64,000 bases of DNA from Phaeosaccion multiseriatum. Its lineage: Eukaryota > Protista > Ochrophyta, other classes. Made by a program: the position numbers and the translations under genes. The notes under the pieces were generated by a model. That model saw only the letters and a program-made list of their open reading frames with translations. It did no database searches and was not told the origin of the DNA. Numbering within the stretch: position 1 is the first letter of the stretch; every line of letters begins with the position of its first letter. Shown piece by piece: positions 1 to 50,776 of the stretch. The stretch lies in the NCBI GenBank assembly GCA_965112735.1, contig OZ218952.1, positions 5,332,001-5,396,000 on the forward strand, in the 5' to 3' direction.

Positions 1-121
1 TACGCCGCGGGCTCCATCTGCTCTACTGTGATGCCTCCTTCATCCTGTGGCCGGGTGGTACCTGTTTTGCCCCCTTCAATGTCCTTCGCCACTCACACCG
101 CGTGTCCTCCTCGCTTCAAAG

Positions 122-3100
122 GATAAGACGTTTGAGGTGAGGAACCAAGTGCTTGCATCATCTTTCTTGTGGTCGGCCTGGCTGCTGCCATTTTGTTTAC
201 CCACTGCTCTTTGTAATTATTTGCTCATCTCTGTCATCGTATGCCGCTGCTCGCTTTCACCCCGTCGACCCACGTCGCCTCTGGTCACCCGTCATGAAGG
301 TTTGCATGGTGGAGTGCACGGATCCTGATAGCTGCATAGTGAGTAAGGAGGTCTCTTGGTGCAGGCAGGTGTTGCCCGTTCCCCTGTCCCCTGCGCGCCC
401 CCTCCACCCAATCGTGGAACCCCCTCATCGATGTCATCGATGTCATGATCTTGGCTGGCCTGACACTCCTCCTCCTGGCAATGCCTAGCAATGCCTACAT
501 ACAGGCTGCTGCTGCTCCCCTCGTTCGCGCCTGCATGTGCCGGACCTCCTGCAAGCAGGCCTTGCACCCTCTAGACTCGCCCCTTTGCCTCTCTGCTTCC
601 TGGTCTCTTCTCTCGTCAACGCCCATCCTGCTCCCCTCAAACCATAGGGCGCCACCTTCAAGGACGCTTCGACCGTTACCTGCTCTGATGAGTTCTCATG
701 TCTGGTGAGTTGTCACTCAACCCAACTTGGCTCTCGATGCCTGGCGCCTGGCCGATTCTGTTCGTGCATTCATCCTCCGCCCTCTGCTTGCCAAGCAACG
801 GACCTTGCATTTCCTGACCTCTCCCCTCTTTGCCCCTCTGCTGCTTCCTGCCCTTTTGTTCTCTCGTCCACACACACCCATCCTGCTCCCCTCGAACCAC
901 AGGGGGCCACGTTCAAATGCCAATCGACCGCAACCTGCTCTGGGGAACTCTCATGTATGGTGAGTGATCAGCCAACCCATATCCGCTCTCCTGGCCTGGC
1001 CGGTTCTTTACCTTACTCGTGCCTTCGGCTGCACGCATGACGGCCCACACCTTAGCAACCCTTCCCCCTCTCCTGACTGTCCTATCTCTTCTCTCGTCCA
1101 CACACCCACCCTGCTCCCCTCGAACCACAGGGGGCCACGTTCGAATGCGAATCGACCGCAGCATGCTCTGGGGTAGAGTCCTGTCGTGTGAGTGATCAGT
1201 CAACCCATAGCTATCCGCTTTCCTTGCCTGGCAGGTTCTTGCCCTTGCCTTCCTCGTGACTTTCCGGTGCACGCATGACGGCGCGCACCTCAAGCCTTCC
1301 CCCTCCTCTCCTGACCTCTCCTCTGTGCCCTTCTGCTGCCTCCTGCCCTCTTCTCTCGTCCACACCCGCCCTACTCCCCTCAAACCATAGGGGACCACGT
1401 TCCAAGGCTCATCGACCGCAGCCTGCTCTGAATTAGATTCATGTCGTGTGAGTGACCAGCCAACCTATATCCGCTCTCCTTGCCTGGACTTTGGTTCCTT
1501 GAGCCTTGTCTTATTCATGACTTTCCGCTGCAAACATGACGGCGGACACCTCAAGCCTCAACCCCCTCCTGACCTCCCCTCTGTGCCCCTCTGCTGCTTC
1601 CTGCCTTCTTCTCTCGTCCACACCCACCCTGCTCCCGCCCCTCAAACCATAGGACGCCACGTTCGGAGGCCAATCGACCGCAGACTGCTCTGGGGTCCGC
1701 TCCTGTCTCGTGAGTGATCAGCCAACCCATATCCGCTCTCCTTGCCTGGCCGGTTCCTTGAGCCTGGCCTTGCTCATGACTTTCCACTGCACGCATGACG
1801 GCGCACACCTCAAGCCTCCCCCCTCTCCTGACCTCCCCTCTGTGCCCGTCTGCTGGTTCCTGCCCTCTTCTCTCGTCCACACCCACCCTGCTCCCGCCCC
1901 TCAAACCATAGTCGGCCACGTTCGAAGGCCAATCGACCGCAGCCTGCTCTGGGATAGGCTCCTGTGATGTGAGTGATCAGCCAACCCATATCCGCTCTCC
2001 TTGCCGGGCTGGTTCCTTGAGCCCAGCCTTCCTCGTGACTCTCCGCTGCACGCATGACGGCGCACACCTCAAGCTTTCCCCCTCTTCTGACCTCCCCTCT
2101 TGCCCTTCTGCTGTTCCCTGTCCTCTTCTCTCGTCCACACCCACCCTGCTCCCCTCAAACCATAGGAGGCCACGTTCGATGGCCAATCGACCGCAGCCTG
2201 CTCTGCGTTAATCTCCTGTGATGTGAGTACCCTGCCTGTCACACACCAGCCAAATCCGCGGTGCACGGCTGAATGTGTGGCTTAGCTACTTCTCGTACCG
2301 CACCGCTGCACGGCCCATACCTCGAGCTTGGCTCCTCGGCTTACCTCCCCTCTGTGCCTCTGGCCTCCTCTGCTTGTCCTCCTGCTCTCTCTATCCCAAA
2401 CACAGACTAGCCTTTTCATCGATTCGTCCATCGCTACGTGCGCCACCACGGAGTACTCCTGCCGTAATCTCCAGGTGTGTGTGTGTCTGACGAGTGGCCA
2501 GTAAAGGCACTGGGACTGGGCCAGCCCATGCAAGGGGACGGTAGAGGAGACAGTCCGTTTGCGAGAGATGTGATACATGCGGTGAGATGACGAATGACCA
2601 CCCGCACTTCTCTCGCTCGCACGCTCTCTCACTGTGGCCAACAGACAGCAGCTATATCACCAGGCACTGCATGCTGCATAGGCGAGTTTTGGTAAGTAGT
2701 AGTCGCAGGCAAACCGCCGCACTTTGTCCCCGGCCCATACGAGAGTTGTCCAAGAGGTCGAGGAGCGCTGTGTATGGCATGCCTCTTTTCGGGCAAACCC
2801 TTGCCCCCTGCGCTCACATATTTCCCCCATGCCCATCTCTTTGTGCGTGTTGCTGTACCGTAAACTCCCCTTTCCCGTGAACCCCGCCCGTGCGACTTTA
2901 CAACGCAAATACGATAGCTCTGACTTCGCCAATCTGTGTCCAGGTGAGAACGAGTGGAATAGTGAGGCAGACCTCGTCGCTCCCCCACTGGGCTGCTTTG
3001 GCATCTGCTGCTTCTCAAGGAGCGCGGATTGTTTACTCGTCATCCACTGCCCACCAACCTGACGAAAGCTTTTCTTGTCCCCTTTGTCATCGCTCCCCAC

Positions 3101-3504
3101 CCCCCTCTTGCCGCGGCGTCTCGCTCGTGCGGCGGTGCGGCCCTCCTGATGCAGACGAGGACGGGGACGGCGTTGCGGACCGTGTCGACAAGTGAGTGAC
3201 TTAGAGAATGGACCGACTGGGTGTGTAGGCCTAGGTGAAGTGAACGTTGCTTGTTCATGTGGGTGAGCTTTGCGTGGTCCGGGTGTGACCCCCCCAATGC
3301 ATCTCTCCAATACTGCGTGACCTGCGTGCCCCACCCCGCTCGCCTCTTTGCAGAGATTCCACACTGACTACATCCCTCCCTCCCTCCCTCCCTCCCTCCC
3401 TCCCCCCCTTGCTTTTGCTTGCGCCTCGCAGCTGCCCGGACACACCCAACGCCCTCCAGGAGGACTCCGACGAAGACGGAATAGGAGATGTCTGTGACAC
3501 GTAA
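122..3504 (+). CDS. 5'-partial 14-exon gene encoding a Cys-rich 19-aa tandem-repeat protein with C-terminal thrombospondin type-3 (Ca-binding) repeats
   Basis: Manually spliced AG/GT-bounded exons 122-136, 300-338, 648-704, 903-959, 1131-1187, 1391-1447, 1653-1709, 1912-1968, 2166-2222, 2406-2474, 2645-2691, 2918-2943, 3155-3191 and 3432-3504 sum to 705 nt with compatible phases and no internal stop. Translation: DKTFE-VCMVECTDPDSCI-[GATFKDASTVTCSDEFSCL-type x7][83 protein letters not shown]. The C-terminus fits the TSP3 consensus DxDxDGxxDxxDNCP...DxDxDGIGDxCD. The start is presumably upstream of the window. Confidence 0.88.
580..2230 (+). repeat. Tandem array of 7 intron+exon cassettes (period about 228-262 bp)
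   Basis: The blocks 'gtgagtgatcagccaacccatatccgctctcc' (donor side) and 'ctctcgtccacacc..ccctgctcccctcaaaccatag' (acceptor side) recur, with donors at 705, 960, 1188, 1448, 1710, 1969 and 2223. Confidence 0.95.
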
Positions 3505-4870
3505 CCAGGAGCGAGGCTCAAAAACGTGTGCGTGAGGGTGTATCCCCCAGCGCGCCTCTCTCTCTTTAGACTTTGTTTCGTTGTGTTGGCCTTTCCGTAC
3601 CGCCTTAGTTTAGGTTGGGTTGTTTCTTTGCTTTCATATACACGACCGTCAGTCGGACATGTTTGATTTTCATATATTTTGTAGGTTACAGTAGTGGAGC
3701 GTATTGAGCCTATGACTGGTTTCCTCCACAACGTAACAATTACGTAAGGTAAAATAAGGGCGGGTGACGGATCTGAGGGACCGGCCGGCTGGCCCCCTTC
3801 CTCACTCCTGAAACCGTGTAGACCAATTGGAAGGCTTCCTTTACACAAGGAAGTTTCCTGGGTCTCTGGGTAAGGACAGCGCCCTTGCTCTCCAAAAGCA
3901 TTTCATTATTATCACTTCTCGCATCTCTCCTCCTTGACGGCAACTCGGTAGTGCTCAGCCTGGAGGTTATCGTCCTTCTCTCCATGAAGAGGATGCCCGT
4001 TCTCCGCCGCTGGATGTAGATGATGCGAAGGAGAGGTACGCAGATAGAAATAGCGTGTGTATGCGTCAGTCGGCAGTCGTACAAGACTGGCAAGGACTGG
4101 GGCAATACGAAGCGGCAGCGGTCAGTTGACAGCGTGCGGTAAAGGGGAGACTGAGGCTCGTGAGACGTCAGTGGCCGTGGCGAATGACAAACAGAGAGTA
4201 AGCAATGGAGCCGGAGAGGGAAGGGCGACACTCGATAGTGCAACCTTACCTCGAGTCCATAGTAGTCGTGGCTTGCGGCAGAGGCTTGCGGCAGAGGATT
4301 TTTGCGAGCACTACGTGGCTGTGCCCCTAGTCTTTGACTGAGGTGTAGGGTCATTCTGTCGGAACCCTGTAGTTCACAGTTGTCTTGGTACTTCCAACAC
4401 TCCAGCAGAGGGAGGTAGCTGTACCACACATACAGCGGTGTCAGAGGGCCAGCCACCCCCCTTGTGCGTGTTCTTCCCTGTGTGTCTGCGGGGCCAATGA
4501 AGCGCGAGCTTCTACCAGAATCAGAATCAACAGCAGGAGGTCGACAAAAGCGCATCAGCAGTGGTCGACAATAAGTCAATTATTTTTTTTTTTCTTTATT
4601 CCTAACGACTACGAAGCTACAAGAACAGTAACACCCAAAAGAATGTTGATGCTGAGCGAGATGAGGAAATGAGTGTGTGAGGCCGCCCGTTAGGCATCTG
4701 CCTCACCACCCCCTCCACCACCGCCCTCATGAATTGCCTTCTACCCCCCCCCCCCAACTCCCCTACCACAAAGTAGAAGAGCTAGTCAAGCTAGGGAGAG
4801 GGGAGAGTCATGCACGTACCCCCAGCCCCCCTTGAACTTTTTTGCGCCGACCCACAACCACAGAAAGCTC

Positions 4871-5900
4871 TCACAACACCGGTGTGAGACCTGTGAGAGA
4901 AACATACGTAATTCTTAGATTGATTCCTTGCTTGAAGTATTCAATAAAGCTAACCCTGGTTGTGCCACCGTAAGATTGCTGCCTGGGCAAAGCCCCGGTT
5001 GGAGCACGAAGTTGGGCCCCCAGCAGGCGAACTTGGCACCCCACTTCGCAATAAGTATCTTCATCTCGGCCTGAGTGAAGCGTGAAGCAGTCGCCCTCGA
5101 TAGCCCACGCATGCAAGAACGGGCAGACTTTACTGTGGCAGCGCTTGTTGTCTAGAAAAGTGTTGCAGTACTTATTGGTCCCGAAGCTCGCTCGCAGGAG
5201 ATAGAACTTCCCCTGCTCGTCCTGTGCAGGCTGTGCATGTCCACGGCCTGGATACTGAGCATGCGCACCACACATTCACAGATGGCCACAGACAGAGACA
5301 GACAGACAGACAGACAGACAGATGGACAGAGAGAGAGAGAGAGAAGAATGCATGAAGAAGAAAGAAGAAAGGGAGAGAGAGGAGACAAAGACGCCGCAAA
5401 CAAGGACAAAACAAAAAGACCAAACGAGAGCAGCAAAAGAGCAACGCCCTCCCTCCTCACTGCTTGCCTTGACCCCCTCCCCTTACGCTTACCACACAAC
5501 ACACCCCTGCCTTCTGCACCTCCACCCTCCCTCCCGCCTTCTCTCTCTCCCTCTCTGCCCCCCCTTTTATTTCGTACCAAGTGAATGCCTGTTCTGGGCT
5601 GTCGAAAGGGAGGTGTGCGCGCCCTGCTGTCTGATCGTCGAAGGCCTGTTTTTTTTTCCGAATCTTTCCGTACTGACCAAAATACTCGGGCCTCTTCAGC
5701 ATATCCTCTGAAAGGAGGTGGGGGGGGGATGCCATGGACGTACGCGATACATCGATCGGCGATGCGCTCCTGCTTCTTCCTCTCCAGCCAGTCGTTGCCG
5801 TTCACCGCCTTCTGCTGACGGAGTGGTAACTGGCGATGCTGCTGGAAAGCCAACTGCTGCTGCCGCTGCTCGCCCTCCTGGTCAGTCACAAACTTCTTCT

Positions 5901-5941
<41 letters not shown>

Positions 5942-6221
5942 TGTCCGGGTTGCTGATGCTGCTGCTGCTGCTGCTTTTGTCCGGGTTGGTGGTGCTGCTG
6001 CTGCTGCTTTGTCCGGGTTGGTGGTGTTGGTTACTGTCCAACGGACTCGCGGCTGATGCCGCGGCAGTGCCTGTGGCCGACACGTTCCTCCTCTCTCCTC
6101 CTGAGTCTTGATGGACGGTGGAGGAGGAGTCGGAAGCTGCGGCGGTGTCCTCCGTTCCATGGGAGTCGCTCCTTCTCTTGTCCTTCTTGCGCTTGTTTCT
6201 CTTCTTTCCCTTGCGGGGCAT
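4871..6221 (-). pseudogene. NOT4: NOT4/CNOT4-like RRM + CCCH zinc-finger gene, frameshifted and lacking a visible RING domain
   Basis: Fragments in different frames: 'RCIAYVHGI', 'SEDMLKRPEYFGQYGKIRK', 'SIQAVD' and 'LRASFGTNKYCNTFLDNKRCHSKVCPFLH' match the NOT4 RRM and C3H1 motifs. At least three frame switches are needed, some at homopolymers, so assembly error is possible. Confidence 0.6.
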
Positions 6222-15291: not shown

Positions 15292-17699
15292 ATGAGGCGT
15301 GGGTTCGGGTTCGGGGTGAGGCTGGTACTGGGGTTGCTTCTTGTGTTTCGTGCCTTCCAGAGTCTGGTGATCGACCAGAGGACCAACGGCGGAGGTCGCA
15401 CGGGCAGCACCACCAGCAGTGTGCGTCTTTCCCCCCAGCACCGATGGGGGCCTTCAACAGAGAAGGACGCCGTGGCATACTCAGCAGAGGCAGAAGGGGC
15501 TGACGCTGAGAGGAGGATGGCTCGGCAAACAGAAGGGATTGCCGCAGCAGGAAAAAAGAGGGTGGCAGAAGCGGCGACGACGCGGCGTGAGGCTGACTTG
15601 ATGCTGGAGGCTAAAGACTACGAAGGTCTGCTCAAGTCGCCGTATATCGAGGGGCTTTGTGCTAAGAACAAGTGGGAGCTGAAGGCGTCGGCGGAAGAGG
15701 CGAGGAAGACTGGGATTATCGAGGCCATCCTCTTCGACAAGGAGTACGATTTGCTGGAGATGCGTCTCAGGGAGGGACAGGGCATCGTCACAGCGGTGGT
15801 TGTGGTGGAGTCCAACATCACAACGAACGGAAATGACCGTCCAATGAGCCGTTTGTTGCACGCTGCACACCTCACCACCCGCTTCACTCGCTACGACACC
15901 AACATCGAGCATGTGAAGGTAAGTCCTACGATACTTCTTCGGCCTTGGAATCCTCTTCGGACTTGTGGAGACGTGTACCCGTGTCACATTATTCTCTTGC
16001 AGAAGAAGTACTTGCGCATGTGGTCCGGCCTCCTCACTTCACTACTCGAAAGACTTTTCTCTCCCGCTGCTCTTGTGCTGACTGCTGCTGATGCATCCAT
16101 GCCTCCCCCCCCCCCTCTCTCCTCAGGTACTTTGGGGGGCCGAGGAGGAAGCCGCCGCTCATCTCGGTACGGCGAGAGACGAGCTCCTACACAAGGGATT
16201 TCGGAGCCCTCCCCTTATACGAGAGACGTACCTGCGCGATCGATGGGTGCCTGCGGCGGTCAAGGCGGGCCTCCAGCCAACGGATGTGCTCATTGTTGGA
16301 GACGTGGATGAGATGCTCGACAGAGACACACTCTACGCGTTTAAATTCTGTAGCAACCCCGCCATGCAGCAGTGCGACCCCAAACTCAACGACTTGGGAG
16401 GCCCAAAAGTGCTCTGCAGGGGCCGCTTTTGGGAGTCGCACTTCGACTGCCCTGTGCAGCAGAAACACCACCACCCCGATGCCATCTCGGCGCGCTGTGT
16501 GTTTGAGTTGCCTGACATGTGGACCGGGTCGCGCATCCGTCACTTGGCAGGGGGAAGGATGACAGCAGAGGTGTCCGGGTGGCACCTGCGGAATTTCTTG
16601 ACGGTTTCAGAAGTGGCGTGGAAGTACAAGACGTACGGGCACCCGCACCACAAATCGTTACCGAGCCTCGAGGCGAGCATTCAGAAGGAGCGAGAGGCGC
16701 TGTGTCCAAAGAGGGGGGGGCAGCAGCATGGCAGCCGGCGGAGCGGGGAGGAGGAGGGGGAGACTGAGGAGACTGAGGGGGGGGATGGCAGTGGATGGGT
16801 CTTCCCCGAGTTTGAGCGTCTGCCCCGCCTCGTACAGGAGGACCCGCGGCGCTTCTCCAACTTCTTTTGGAGGGATTACAGTTTCAGTCAAGCAGAGGCG
16901 GATGAAGAGGAGGAGGAAGAGGAAGAGGAAGAGGAGGAGGAGGTGGAGGGGGAGGAGGAAGAGGAAGGGGAAGGGGAAGGGGAGGAGGAGGAGGAGGAGG
17001 AGGAGGAGGAGGAGGAGGAGGAGGAGGAGGAGGAGGAGGAGGAGGAGGAGGAGGAGGAGGAGGAGGAGGAGGAGGAGGAGGAGGAGGAAGAGGAAGGAGG
17101 AGGAGGAGGAGGAGGAGGAGGAGGAGGAGGAGGAGGAGGAGGAGGAGGAGGAGGAGGAGGAGGAGGAGGAGGAGGAGGAGGAGGAGGAGGAGGAGGAGGA
17201 GGAGGAGGAGGAGGAGGAGGAGGAGGAGCAGGAGGAGGAGGAGGAGGAGGAGGAGGAGGAGGAGGAGGAGGAGGAGGAGGAGGAGGAGGAGGAGGAGGAG
17301 GAGGAGGAGGAGGAGGAGGAGGAGGAGGAGGAGGAGGAGGAGGAGGAGGAGGAGGAGGAGGAGGAGGAGGAGGAGGAGGAGAAAAAGGAGGAGGAGGAGA
17401 AGGAGGAGGCGGAGAAGGAGAAGGAGGAGGAGGAGGAGGAGGAGCAGGAGGAGGAGAAAAAGGAGGAGGAGGAGGAGGAGGAGGAGGAGGAGGAGGAGGA
17501 GGAGGAGAAAAAGGAGGAGGAGCAGGAGGAGGATGAGGAGGAGGAGGATGAGGAGGAGGAGCAGGAGGAGGAGGAGCAGGAGGAGGAGGATGAGGAGGAG
17601 CAGCAGCAGCAGCAGCAGGAGGAGGAGGAGGAGGAAAAGGAGGAGAACGAAGAGGATGGGCACACGGCAGACACGGGACCGGTCTTGATGAGTCAATAG
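15292..17699 (+). CDS. GT17 family glycosyltransferase (MGAT3/GnT-III-like), type II membrane protein with an acidic low-complexity tail
   Basis: N-terminal TM segment and GT17 motifs 'ILFDKEYDLLEMRLRE..VVVVESNIT', 'RETYLRD', 'LIVGDVDE' and 'GWHLRNF'. Exon 1 is 15292-15918 and exon 2 starts at 16127. The 3' end is ambiguous: stop at 17536 as assembled, or at 17699 if a 1-nt slip near 17095 is corrected. Confidence 0.82.
16905..17640 (+). repeat. About 730-bp (GAG)n trinucleotide expansion inside a CDS
   Basis: Directly visible, near-pure GAG/GGA run. Confidence 0.95.
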
Positions 17700-49160: not shown

Positions 49161-50448
49161 TCCATCCGTGTCCACCAATCAGTCCATCAATCACCTAAGT
49201 CGATTAGTCCTCTCCGACTGTCCGTGTCCACCAATCAGTCCATCAATCACCTAAGTCGATTAGTCCTCTCCGACTGTCCGTGTCCACCAATCAGTCCATC
49301 AATCACCTAAGTCGATTCGTCATCTCCTACTGTCCGTGTCCACCAATCAGTCCATCAATCACCTAAGTCGATTCGTCATCTCCTACTGTCCGTGTCCACC
49401 AATCAGTCCATCAATCACCTAAGTCGATTAGTCATCTCCGACTGTCCGTGTCCACCAATCAGTCAATCAATCACCTAAGTCGATTAGTCATCTCCTACTG
49501 TCCGTGTCCACCAATCAGTCCATCAATCACCTAAGTCGATTAGTCATCTCCTACTGTCCGTGTCCACCAATCAGTCCATCAATCACCTAAGTCGATTAGT
49601 CATCTCCGACTGTCCGTTTCCACCAATCAGTCCATCAATCACCTAAGTCGATTAGTCATCTCCTACTGTCCGTGTCCACCAATCAGTCCATCAATCACCT
49701 AAGTCGATTAGTCCTCTCCTACTGTCCGTGTCCACCAATCAGTCCATCAATCACCTAAGTCGATTAGTCCTCTCCGACTGTCCGTGTCCACCAATCAGTC
49801 CATCAATGACCTACGTCGATTAGTCATCTTCGACTGTCCGTGTCCACCAATCAGTCCATCAATCACCTAAGTCGATTAGTCATCTCCTACTGTCCGTGTC
49901 CACCAATCAGTCAATCAATCACTTAAGTTGAGTCCTCTCCGACTGTCCGTGTCCACCAATCAGTCAATCAATCACTTCAGTCGATTAGTCCTCTCCGACT
50001 GTCCGTGTCCACCAATCAGTCCATCAATCACTTAAGTTGATTAGTCCTCTCCGACTGTCCGTGTCCACCAATCAGTCAATCAATCACCTAAGTCGATTAG
50101 TCCTCTCCGACTGTCCGTGTCCACCAATCAGTCAATCATTCACTTAAGTTGATTAGTCCTCTCCGACTGTCCGTGTCTACCAATCAGTCAATCAATCACT
50201 TCAGTCGATTAGTCCTCTCCGACTGTCCGTGTCCACCAATCAGTCAATCAATCACTTAAGTCGATTAGTCCTCTCCGACTGTCCGTGTCCACCAATCAGT
50301 CAATCAATCACTTAAGTCGATTAGTCATCTCCTACTGTCCGTGTCCACCAATCAGTCCATCAATCACTTAAGTCGACTAGTCATCTCCGACTGTCCGTGT
50401 CCACCAATCAGTCAATCAATCACTAAGTCGATTAGTCGTCTTCGACTG
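49143..50448. repeat. 56-bp minisatellite, about 23 copies
   Basis: Unit ctccgactgtccgtgtccaccaatcagtccatcaatcacctaagtcgattagtcct; the period is 56 (tccgtgtccacc at 49165, 49221, 49277...). There are no unique spacers. Confidence 0.97.
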
Positions 50449-50776
50449 TTGAGACTATCCACCAGTGGGGGGTTCATTGACTAAAAGGAATCAACCAAAT
50501 AGGGGGCCTCAGATGGCGACTTTTTAGCGCTTGCGTTTTAAACTTAATAGTCTCTTAGCGTTAGCAATTAGTCTCTGCGGGACTCCCCCAGTCGGTCAGT
50601 CGGTCAGTCGGTCGGTCGGTCGGTCAGAAAAAAAAAAAGACCGCTCCACGAAAACACACGAAATTGAAACGCAAACTGTACCTAACCCCCCCCCACCCCC
50701 CCCGTAATTTCCAACAGCAGAGAGGAGGAAGAAACGTGAAGAGAGAGGAAAAAGGGATACGAGAGGTTTGTGAAGA

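Follow-up and report, generated by a model that had tools for sequence, protein, structure and literature searches.

The repeat-exon array and the gene model

We analysed a stretch of 64,000 nucleotides (hereafter the window) from the ochrophyte Phaeosaccion multiseriatum (assembly GCA_965112735.1, contig OZ218952.1, positions 5,332,001 to 5,396,000 of the forward strand), near the start of which tandem-repeat and DNA-profile searches locate an array of intron-plus-exon units of about 259 bp (552–2401, + strand). Tandem Repeats Finder gave a period of 259 bp with 85% matches, and a repeat search placed seven copies at a spacing of 228–262 nt. The original prediction held that what looks like a satellite is a series of coding micro-exons. 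A regular-expression scan returned seven segments of exactly 57 nt, all in phase 0-0 and free of stops in phase 0, each preceded by TAG or CAG and followed by GTGAGT; their coordinates and all seven peptides quoted earlier were reproduced exactly. The repeat exons, each coding for 19 residues on the + strand, occupy 648–704 (exon 1, the most diverged of the seven), 903–959 (exon 2), 1131–1187 (exon 3), 1391–1447 (exon 4), 1653–1709 (exon 5), 1912–1968 (exon 6) and 2166–2222 (exon 7). Their consensus is x-A-T-F-x-G-Q-S-T-A-A-C-S-G-x-x-S-C-x (19 residues), and a codon-degenerate pattern of the scaffold matches 5 of the 7 exons, whereas shuffled sequence would be expected to give 0.00 hits. The only two extra Cys residues share one position of the repeat, position 6, and stand in register in the neighbouring exons 2 and 3.

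The six array introns measure, in order, 198, 171, 203, 205, 202 and 197 nt, and the intron repeat starts with a half copy (552–647, +) and ends with a weak one (2248–2401, +). The description of these introns as near-identical was overstated: their identity ranges from 60 to 92% overall, and values of 86–92% are reached only by those between exons 3 and 7. As judged from the sequence, the architecture is that of a cassette, in which duplication of one intron-plus-exon unit would supply one more in-frame 19-residue repeat; because every exon is symmetric, each such duplication would add its repeat without breaking the frame. Intron 1 (705–902, +, 198 nt) is itself stop-free and in frame, and its retention would add 66 residues with the frame kept; the remaining five are not all open in frame.

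Diverged repeats cap the array on both sides, in agreement with the earlier claim. On the N-terminal side the repeat is split between a 15-nt micro-exon (122–136, +, phase 0-0, with AG and GTGAGG borders), which encodes its first five residues, DKTFE, and a 39-nt exon (300–338, +, phase 0-0), which encodes the remaining 13 residues, three of them Cys. On the C-terminal side, a 69-nt exon (2406–2474, +, phase 0-0) encodes a repeat of 23 residues that retains F, S, C and SC. Both flanking repeats have AG/GT borders and phase 0, and they align to the array on F4, S8, C12, S17 and C18. Still farther upstream, the edge of the window truncates an exon; its 3′ end (1–54, +) is open in frame 0, encodes a diverged Cys...SC repeat and precedes GTGGTA.

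Downstream of the capping repeat, four small exons were predicted on the + strand: a 47-nt exon (2645–2691, phase 0 in and 2 out) encoding a Cys-rich linker, a 26-nt micro-exon (2918–2943, phase 2 in and 1 out), a 37-nt exon (3155–3191) carrying the first half of a thrombospondin type-3 (TSP3) repeat (DEDGDGVADRVD), and a terminal exon (3432–3504) that reads, in the spliced frame, NCPDTPN..Q.DSDEDGIGDVCDT followed by a TAA stop. The gene model joins 14 exons, namely 122–136, 300–338, the seven repeat exons, 2406–2474 and these four, into a 705-nt open frame ending at the TAA, with consistent phases and GT/AG borders throughout; 13 of the 14 exons within the window are 15–69 nt long, and ten are symmetric. 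Read from this spliced frame, the motif D-E-D-G-D-G-V-A-D-R-V-D-N-C-P ... Q-E-D-S-D-E-D-G-I-G-D-V-C-D contains the full calcium-binding pattern D-x-D-x-D-G-x-x-D-x-x-D-N-C-P-x-x-x-N-x-x-Q-x-D-x-D-x-D-G-x-G-D-x-C-D. The terminal exon alone (23 residues) matches Pfam TSP_3 (PF02412) with 19.7 bits (gathering cut-off 25) and E = 6.8e-4, the shortfall in score being due to so short a query. The last three exons (26, 37 and 73 nt) have phases 2, 1 and 2, and the complete motif requires that they be spliced together as predicted; since it appears only after the removal of three predicted introns, the existence of a spliced gene is strongly supported internally. The predicted protein terminates three residues past the motif and has no hydrophobic tail, so it would lack a C-terminal anchor. 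In the last intron, just 5′ of the acceptor of the terminal exon, there is a (TCCC)n microsatellite (3373–3409), at which the Logan contigs break.

Coding constraint and the proposed working of the repeat

Units 3–7 were aligned, a unit being defined as an exon together with the intron before it. Gaps fell in none of the 57 exon columns versus 47 of the 215 intron columns. Defining codons 2–4, 8–13 and 17–18 as scaffold and codons 1, 5–7, 14–16 and 19 as variable, we obtained for the scaffold of exons 3–7 a dN of 0.036 against a dS of 0.090 (Nei–Gojobori), with a Jukes–Cantor distance of 0.117 in the adjoining introns, which indicates that the Phe/Ser/Thr/Cys scaffold is under purifying constraint. 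In the variable codons, dN reached 0.77 and differences were equally frequent at the three codon positions. When no choice of sites was made, diversity was 0.21–0.22 in the exons versus 0.11–0.14 in the introns (column-permutation p 0.002–0.018), and of all 9-nt windows along the unit, the one at codons 14–16 was the most diverse (pi 0.50–0.54, p 0.003–0.005). These statistics, which rest on five to seven related sequences, constitute moderately good evidence that three short blocks evolve fast while the scaffold stays fixed, and diversifying selection probably acts on these blocks. Taken together, the 14-exon frame, the TSP3 motif assembled by splicing, the exons free of insertions and deletions (indels) and the conserved Cys/Phe scaffold support what had been proposed for this locus, namely that it is probably a cassette array within a spliced gene and not a non-coding satellite.

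The sequencing runs that contain the locus all come from one sample. Four of them include 92–95% of the words sampled from it, introns included, and none were found in a fifth run labelled as the same species. Depth across exons and introns is flat in the four (about 104, 49, 64 and 51), the contigs identical to the window run through the introns, and no GT..AG joints were found at the predicted junctions when these runs, which consist of genomic DNA, were aligned with the locus. The four runs confirm the assembly and bear on genomic DNA only. They leave the gene without transcript evidence, a circumstance that would also fit a non-functional relic, that is, a decaying fragment of a duplicated gene or a satellite, unexpressed and exon-like through recent common descent. 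The protein collections searched, which include gene predictions, lack a homologue, and chance long open reading frames (ORFs) are frequent in this sequence of 59% GC; both facts agree with such an origin. Nevertheless, 14 exons have kept their frame with no stop, no frameshift and no lost splice site despite up to 40% nucleotide divergence between units, indels are limited to the introns while dN stays below dS in the scaffold codons, and the downstream micro-exons still build a perfect TSP3 motif. On this balance we consider a relic unlikely.

We therefore hold, with fair assurance, that positions 1–3504 (+) contain the 3′ portion of a large eukaryotic gene with many exons, which would encode an extracellular, Cys-rich modular protein whose array grew by germline duplication. 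Several points weigh against this interpretation. It has no transcript support, the only runs with the locus being genomic, as their flat depth, retained introns and lack of GT-AG joints show. The 5′ part of the gene, including any signal peptide, lies beyond the window, and secretion is deduced solely from the richness in Cys and the presence of TSP3. The hypervariable codons were chosen post hoc from the same seven sequences, which share their ancestry, and the permutation p-values are consequently optimistic; when unit 3 is included, the excess of variable exon columns is not significant (40% versus 32%, p = 0.26). Finally, the solenoid fold considered below is purely inferred.

The array most likely evolved by tandem duplication of the ordinary germline kind, with its loop codons changing fast. 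The unit duplicated in the germline would comprise one exon, together with the 3′ part of the intron before it and the 5′ part of the intron after it, and its repetition would have produced about ten 19-residue repeats, each on one phase 0-0 exon: the seven canonical ones of 57 nt, and diverged ones flanking them on both sides. After duplication, the ATF, STAACS and SC scaffold would have been held by purifying selection, while the blocks at codons 19/1, 5–7 and 14–16 would have changed faster than the adjoining introns. The repeats may form the stacked coils of a beta-solenoid stapled by disulfides, each coil contributing three conserved strands and three variable turns. A three-sided coil is suggested because three conserved blocks (A-T-F, S-T-A-A-C-S and S-C) alternate with three variable ones; it would span 19 residues, be stapled by C-x5-C and be repeated some ten times in the solenoid, which the diverged flanking repeats would close off at both ends. 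The position-6 Cys pair of repeats 2 and 3 hints at coils stacked in register, although common descent could explain it too. The exons would be spliced constitutively, and the array would be followed by the short Cys-rich linker and the C-terminal TSP3 repeat, a tail expected to bind calcium.

In such a protein, the variable turns could form a fast-evolving binding surface, and its likely role is in the extracellular matrix, in adhesion or in recognition. A fixed scaffold with three fast blocks, set between slower introns, is what would be expected of a binding surface under diversifying selection; the family may therefore act in recognition or adhesion at the surface of algal cells. If the gene is expressed, the one-repeat-per-exon design would extend, in genomes of the brown-alga type, beyond the LRR and TPR repeats found in candidate immune receptors of the cytoplasm, and would also serve an orphan Cys-stapled repeat that is extracellular and linked to a thrombospondin motif for calcium binding.

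Paralogous contigs and the proposed cassette diversification

Besides the contigs identical to the window, the genomic runs yield others that are 90–95% alike and pile up over the predicted C-terminal exons, not over their introns. The depth of these look-alike contigs, which does not represent a copy number, is raised several-fold over the array, 2401–2760 and 3121–3240, and more weakly over 2881–3000 and 3361–3480; it remains at baseline over the introns at 2761–2880, 3001–3120 and 3241–3360. The 37-nt exon with the first half of the TSP3 repeat thus lies under one of these islands. Because contigs of 90–95% identity cover the C-terminal exons but not the introns, we suggest a small family of paralogues, few in number, whose exons are conserved and whose introns have diverged.

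Some genomic contigs link position 2341 back to 1835 or to 1570 with a few extra letters, and others replace the variable block of one exon with 35 different letters. Most likely, these contigs represent paralogous arrays elsewhere in the genome; alternatively, they may correspond to an allelic structural variant of the array.

The strongest island of paralogue contigs covers a candidate extra exon of 57 nt (2525–2581, +), symmetric and stop-free, with CAG and GTGAGA borders and unrelated to the Cys repeat. It falls within a single modelled intron and would add 19 residues, among them GRGDSP, an RGD motif of the adhesion type. Only 2 such stop-free bordered 57-nt segments occur in the other ~124 kb, both strands counted. 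This segment is possibly an optional exon, neutral to the frame when included, although its inclusion requires a 50-nt intron with no pyrimidine tract.

The original prediction went beyond the gene model and proposed a modular diversification system, by analogy with exon shuffling in algae. The precedent is real. In brown algae, ROCO type I LRR genes and NB-ARC-TPR genes devote one exon to each repeat (Zambounis et al. 2012, PMC3341825; PMC11378527). Each LRR of the Ectocarpus ROCO genes is a 72-nt exon; exon copies located in introns, inactivated or reversed in strand were the grounds for inferring shuffling, and such arrays were reported to be overwhelmingly restricted to LRR and TPR loci in that genome (PMC3341825). 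The array described here resembles them in its single-exon repeats of constant length divisible by three and phase 0-0 (seven exons of 57 nt), in the look-alike introns between the exons, and in the concentration of variation on a few positions of the repeat. It differs from them in the repeat itself, a 19-residue Cys repeat (57 nt) instead of a 24-residue LRR (72 nt) or a 34-residue TPR, and in the partner found in the window, an extracellular TSP3 calcium-binding repeat instead of ROC-COR or NB-ARC. It also differs in that no intronic, inactivated or reverse-strand exon copies accompany it: a protein HMM run in six frames and nhmmer run on both strands recovered the seven exons and no further copy, orphan or reversed, in the 64-kb window.

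This last result bears directly on active diversification, which would entail exon skipping or combining, or frequent unequal crossover or gene conversion with paralogues, and would yield a varied repertoire of surface or recognition proteins. Exons of equal length and phase 0-0 would keep any subset of them in frame, the variable codons outpace the introns in divergence, the genome reads contain paralogous contigs with the same framework and different letters at the variable block, and the algal LRR and TPR genes offer the shuffling precedent (PMC3341825). However, the hallmark of shuffling is absent from the window, as the search for orphan exons showed on either strand, and the youngest introns are already 8–14% apart, a divergence that speaks against continuing homogenisation and against unequal crossover in the very recent past, and indicates that no recent duplication took place at the locus. 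The claim of an active modular system is thus unsupported by these data, and we regard it as quite improbable. We are equally doubtful of the more specific proposal that the repeat is a new scaffold for extracellular recognition in an alga of the stramenopile type, with a small family of paralogous arrays that exchange or patch the three variable blocks by gene conversion or vary the number of coils by exon skipping. If true, it would constitute a germline or transcript-level repertoire akin to the LRR-based systems, built on a disulfide-stapled, calcium-associated solenoid.

Relatives of the repeat and other features of the window

The earlier suggestion that the repeat is of an unrecognised type was examined with a 19-position profile made from the seven repeats, which was run against 1.84 billion representative proteins (E < 0.001). 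Only two proteins matched, both marginally. One is a Chlam_PMP/Beta_helix protein with a repeat of about 30 residues that opens with V-T-F-E-G-N-S-T-V-T, where the array has A-T-F-E-G-Q-S-T-A-A; the other, an unrelated tandem-repeat protein matched at S-I-A-A-C-S-D, was discarded. A canonical single exon scores 37–42 bits against its own protein model and a 39-bit match was reported, so that an ORF in the collections with even one good copy would have surfaced. The repeat profile found 0 matches in the PDB at E up to 10. Pfam returned nothing for the single repeat exons or for the stop-free stretch 648–959 (two exons with the in-frame intron), queries too short or too diluted to be decisive. 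The codon-degenerate DNA pattern had no match among viral contigs, and its two matches among metagenome contigs were rejected as chance hits, in bacterial genes read in another frame. No Rfam match was obtained for positions 1–6000.

Thus, the profile search, the PDB and the Pfam pieces gave no convincing family, and on sequence comparison the repeat is an orphan within the collections searched, which do not include the products of this genome. We consider it probable that a new type of repeat occupies an already known cassette design. This has a consequence for annotation, since satellite-like arrays in such genomes may conceal micro-exon genes of the kind that standard gene callers and protein databases overlook; no match was present among 15 billion predicted proteins.

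The alternative that the array is a divergent member of the PMP/right-handed parallel beta-helix superfamily, and not a new repeat type, draws on the Chlam_PMP/Beta_helix protein, the better of the two matches among 1.84 billion, with the shared opening of its repeat. The likeness to the Chlamydia PMP-type beta-helix repeats (PF02415, PF13229) consists of the short T-F-E-G-x-S-T stretch and of the coils that are likely stacked in both. The match, however, spans 9–12 residues, and its E = 5e-5 is the sum over seven weak stretches; hhalign gave a probability of 17% over 12 columns, the GGA[ILV] half is absent from every repeat, the period is 19 versus 29–30 residues (~29 in the PMP repeats), and the two Cys have no counterpart in the PMP repeat. 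Membership of the PMP type was rejected on the hhalign value and the lack of GGA[ILV], and we judge the kinship very unlikely.

Other known systems share single traits with the predicted protein. Insect Cys-stapled beta-solenoid antifreeze proteins have coils of 12–19 residues with Thr/Ser/Ala-rich strands and one C-x5-C pair per coil; the hypervariable turns and the TSP3 tail predicted here are without counterpart in them. With the thrombospondin type-3 proteins (PF02412), the gene shares the full Asp-rich calcium-binding motif at its C-terminus. Unlike those proteins, it has no more than about one and a half repeats, which lie at the extreme C-terminus, are spread over three tiny exons and are joined to an unrelated Cys array, and no thrombospondin C-terminal domain comes after them. 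The schistosome micro-exon genes (MEGs), in which variation by exon skipping is documented (10.1101/2023.06.21.545858, PMC4350168), are similar in that their coding sequence consists mainly of symmetric micro-exons (≤81 nt), their products are presumed to be secreted and their coding positions evolve fast. No sequence relationship links them to the array, and MEG exons do not derive from one structural repeat copied in tandem along with its intron.

Pieces of ORF at 4871–5889, on the − strand and downstream of the repeat gene, include a CCCH zinc-finger-like stretch and an RRM-like stretch, YFGQYGKI, a combination reminiscent of a CNOT4-type gene. No Pfam family was assigned to these pieces, to the opposite strand or to the neighbouring ORFs, and an Atlas look-up with the CCCH zinc-finger ORF yielded generic zf-CCCH clusters only. 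A (GAG)n tract at 16895–17656 (about 254 copies, 89% matches) lies within long ORFs on both strands and could be either a poly-Glu-like low-complexity coding tract or a plain microsatellite. At 49165–50449 there is a 56-bp minisatellite with 23 copies and 95% matches.

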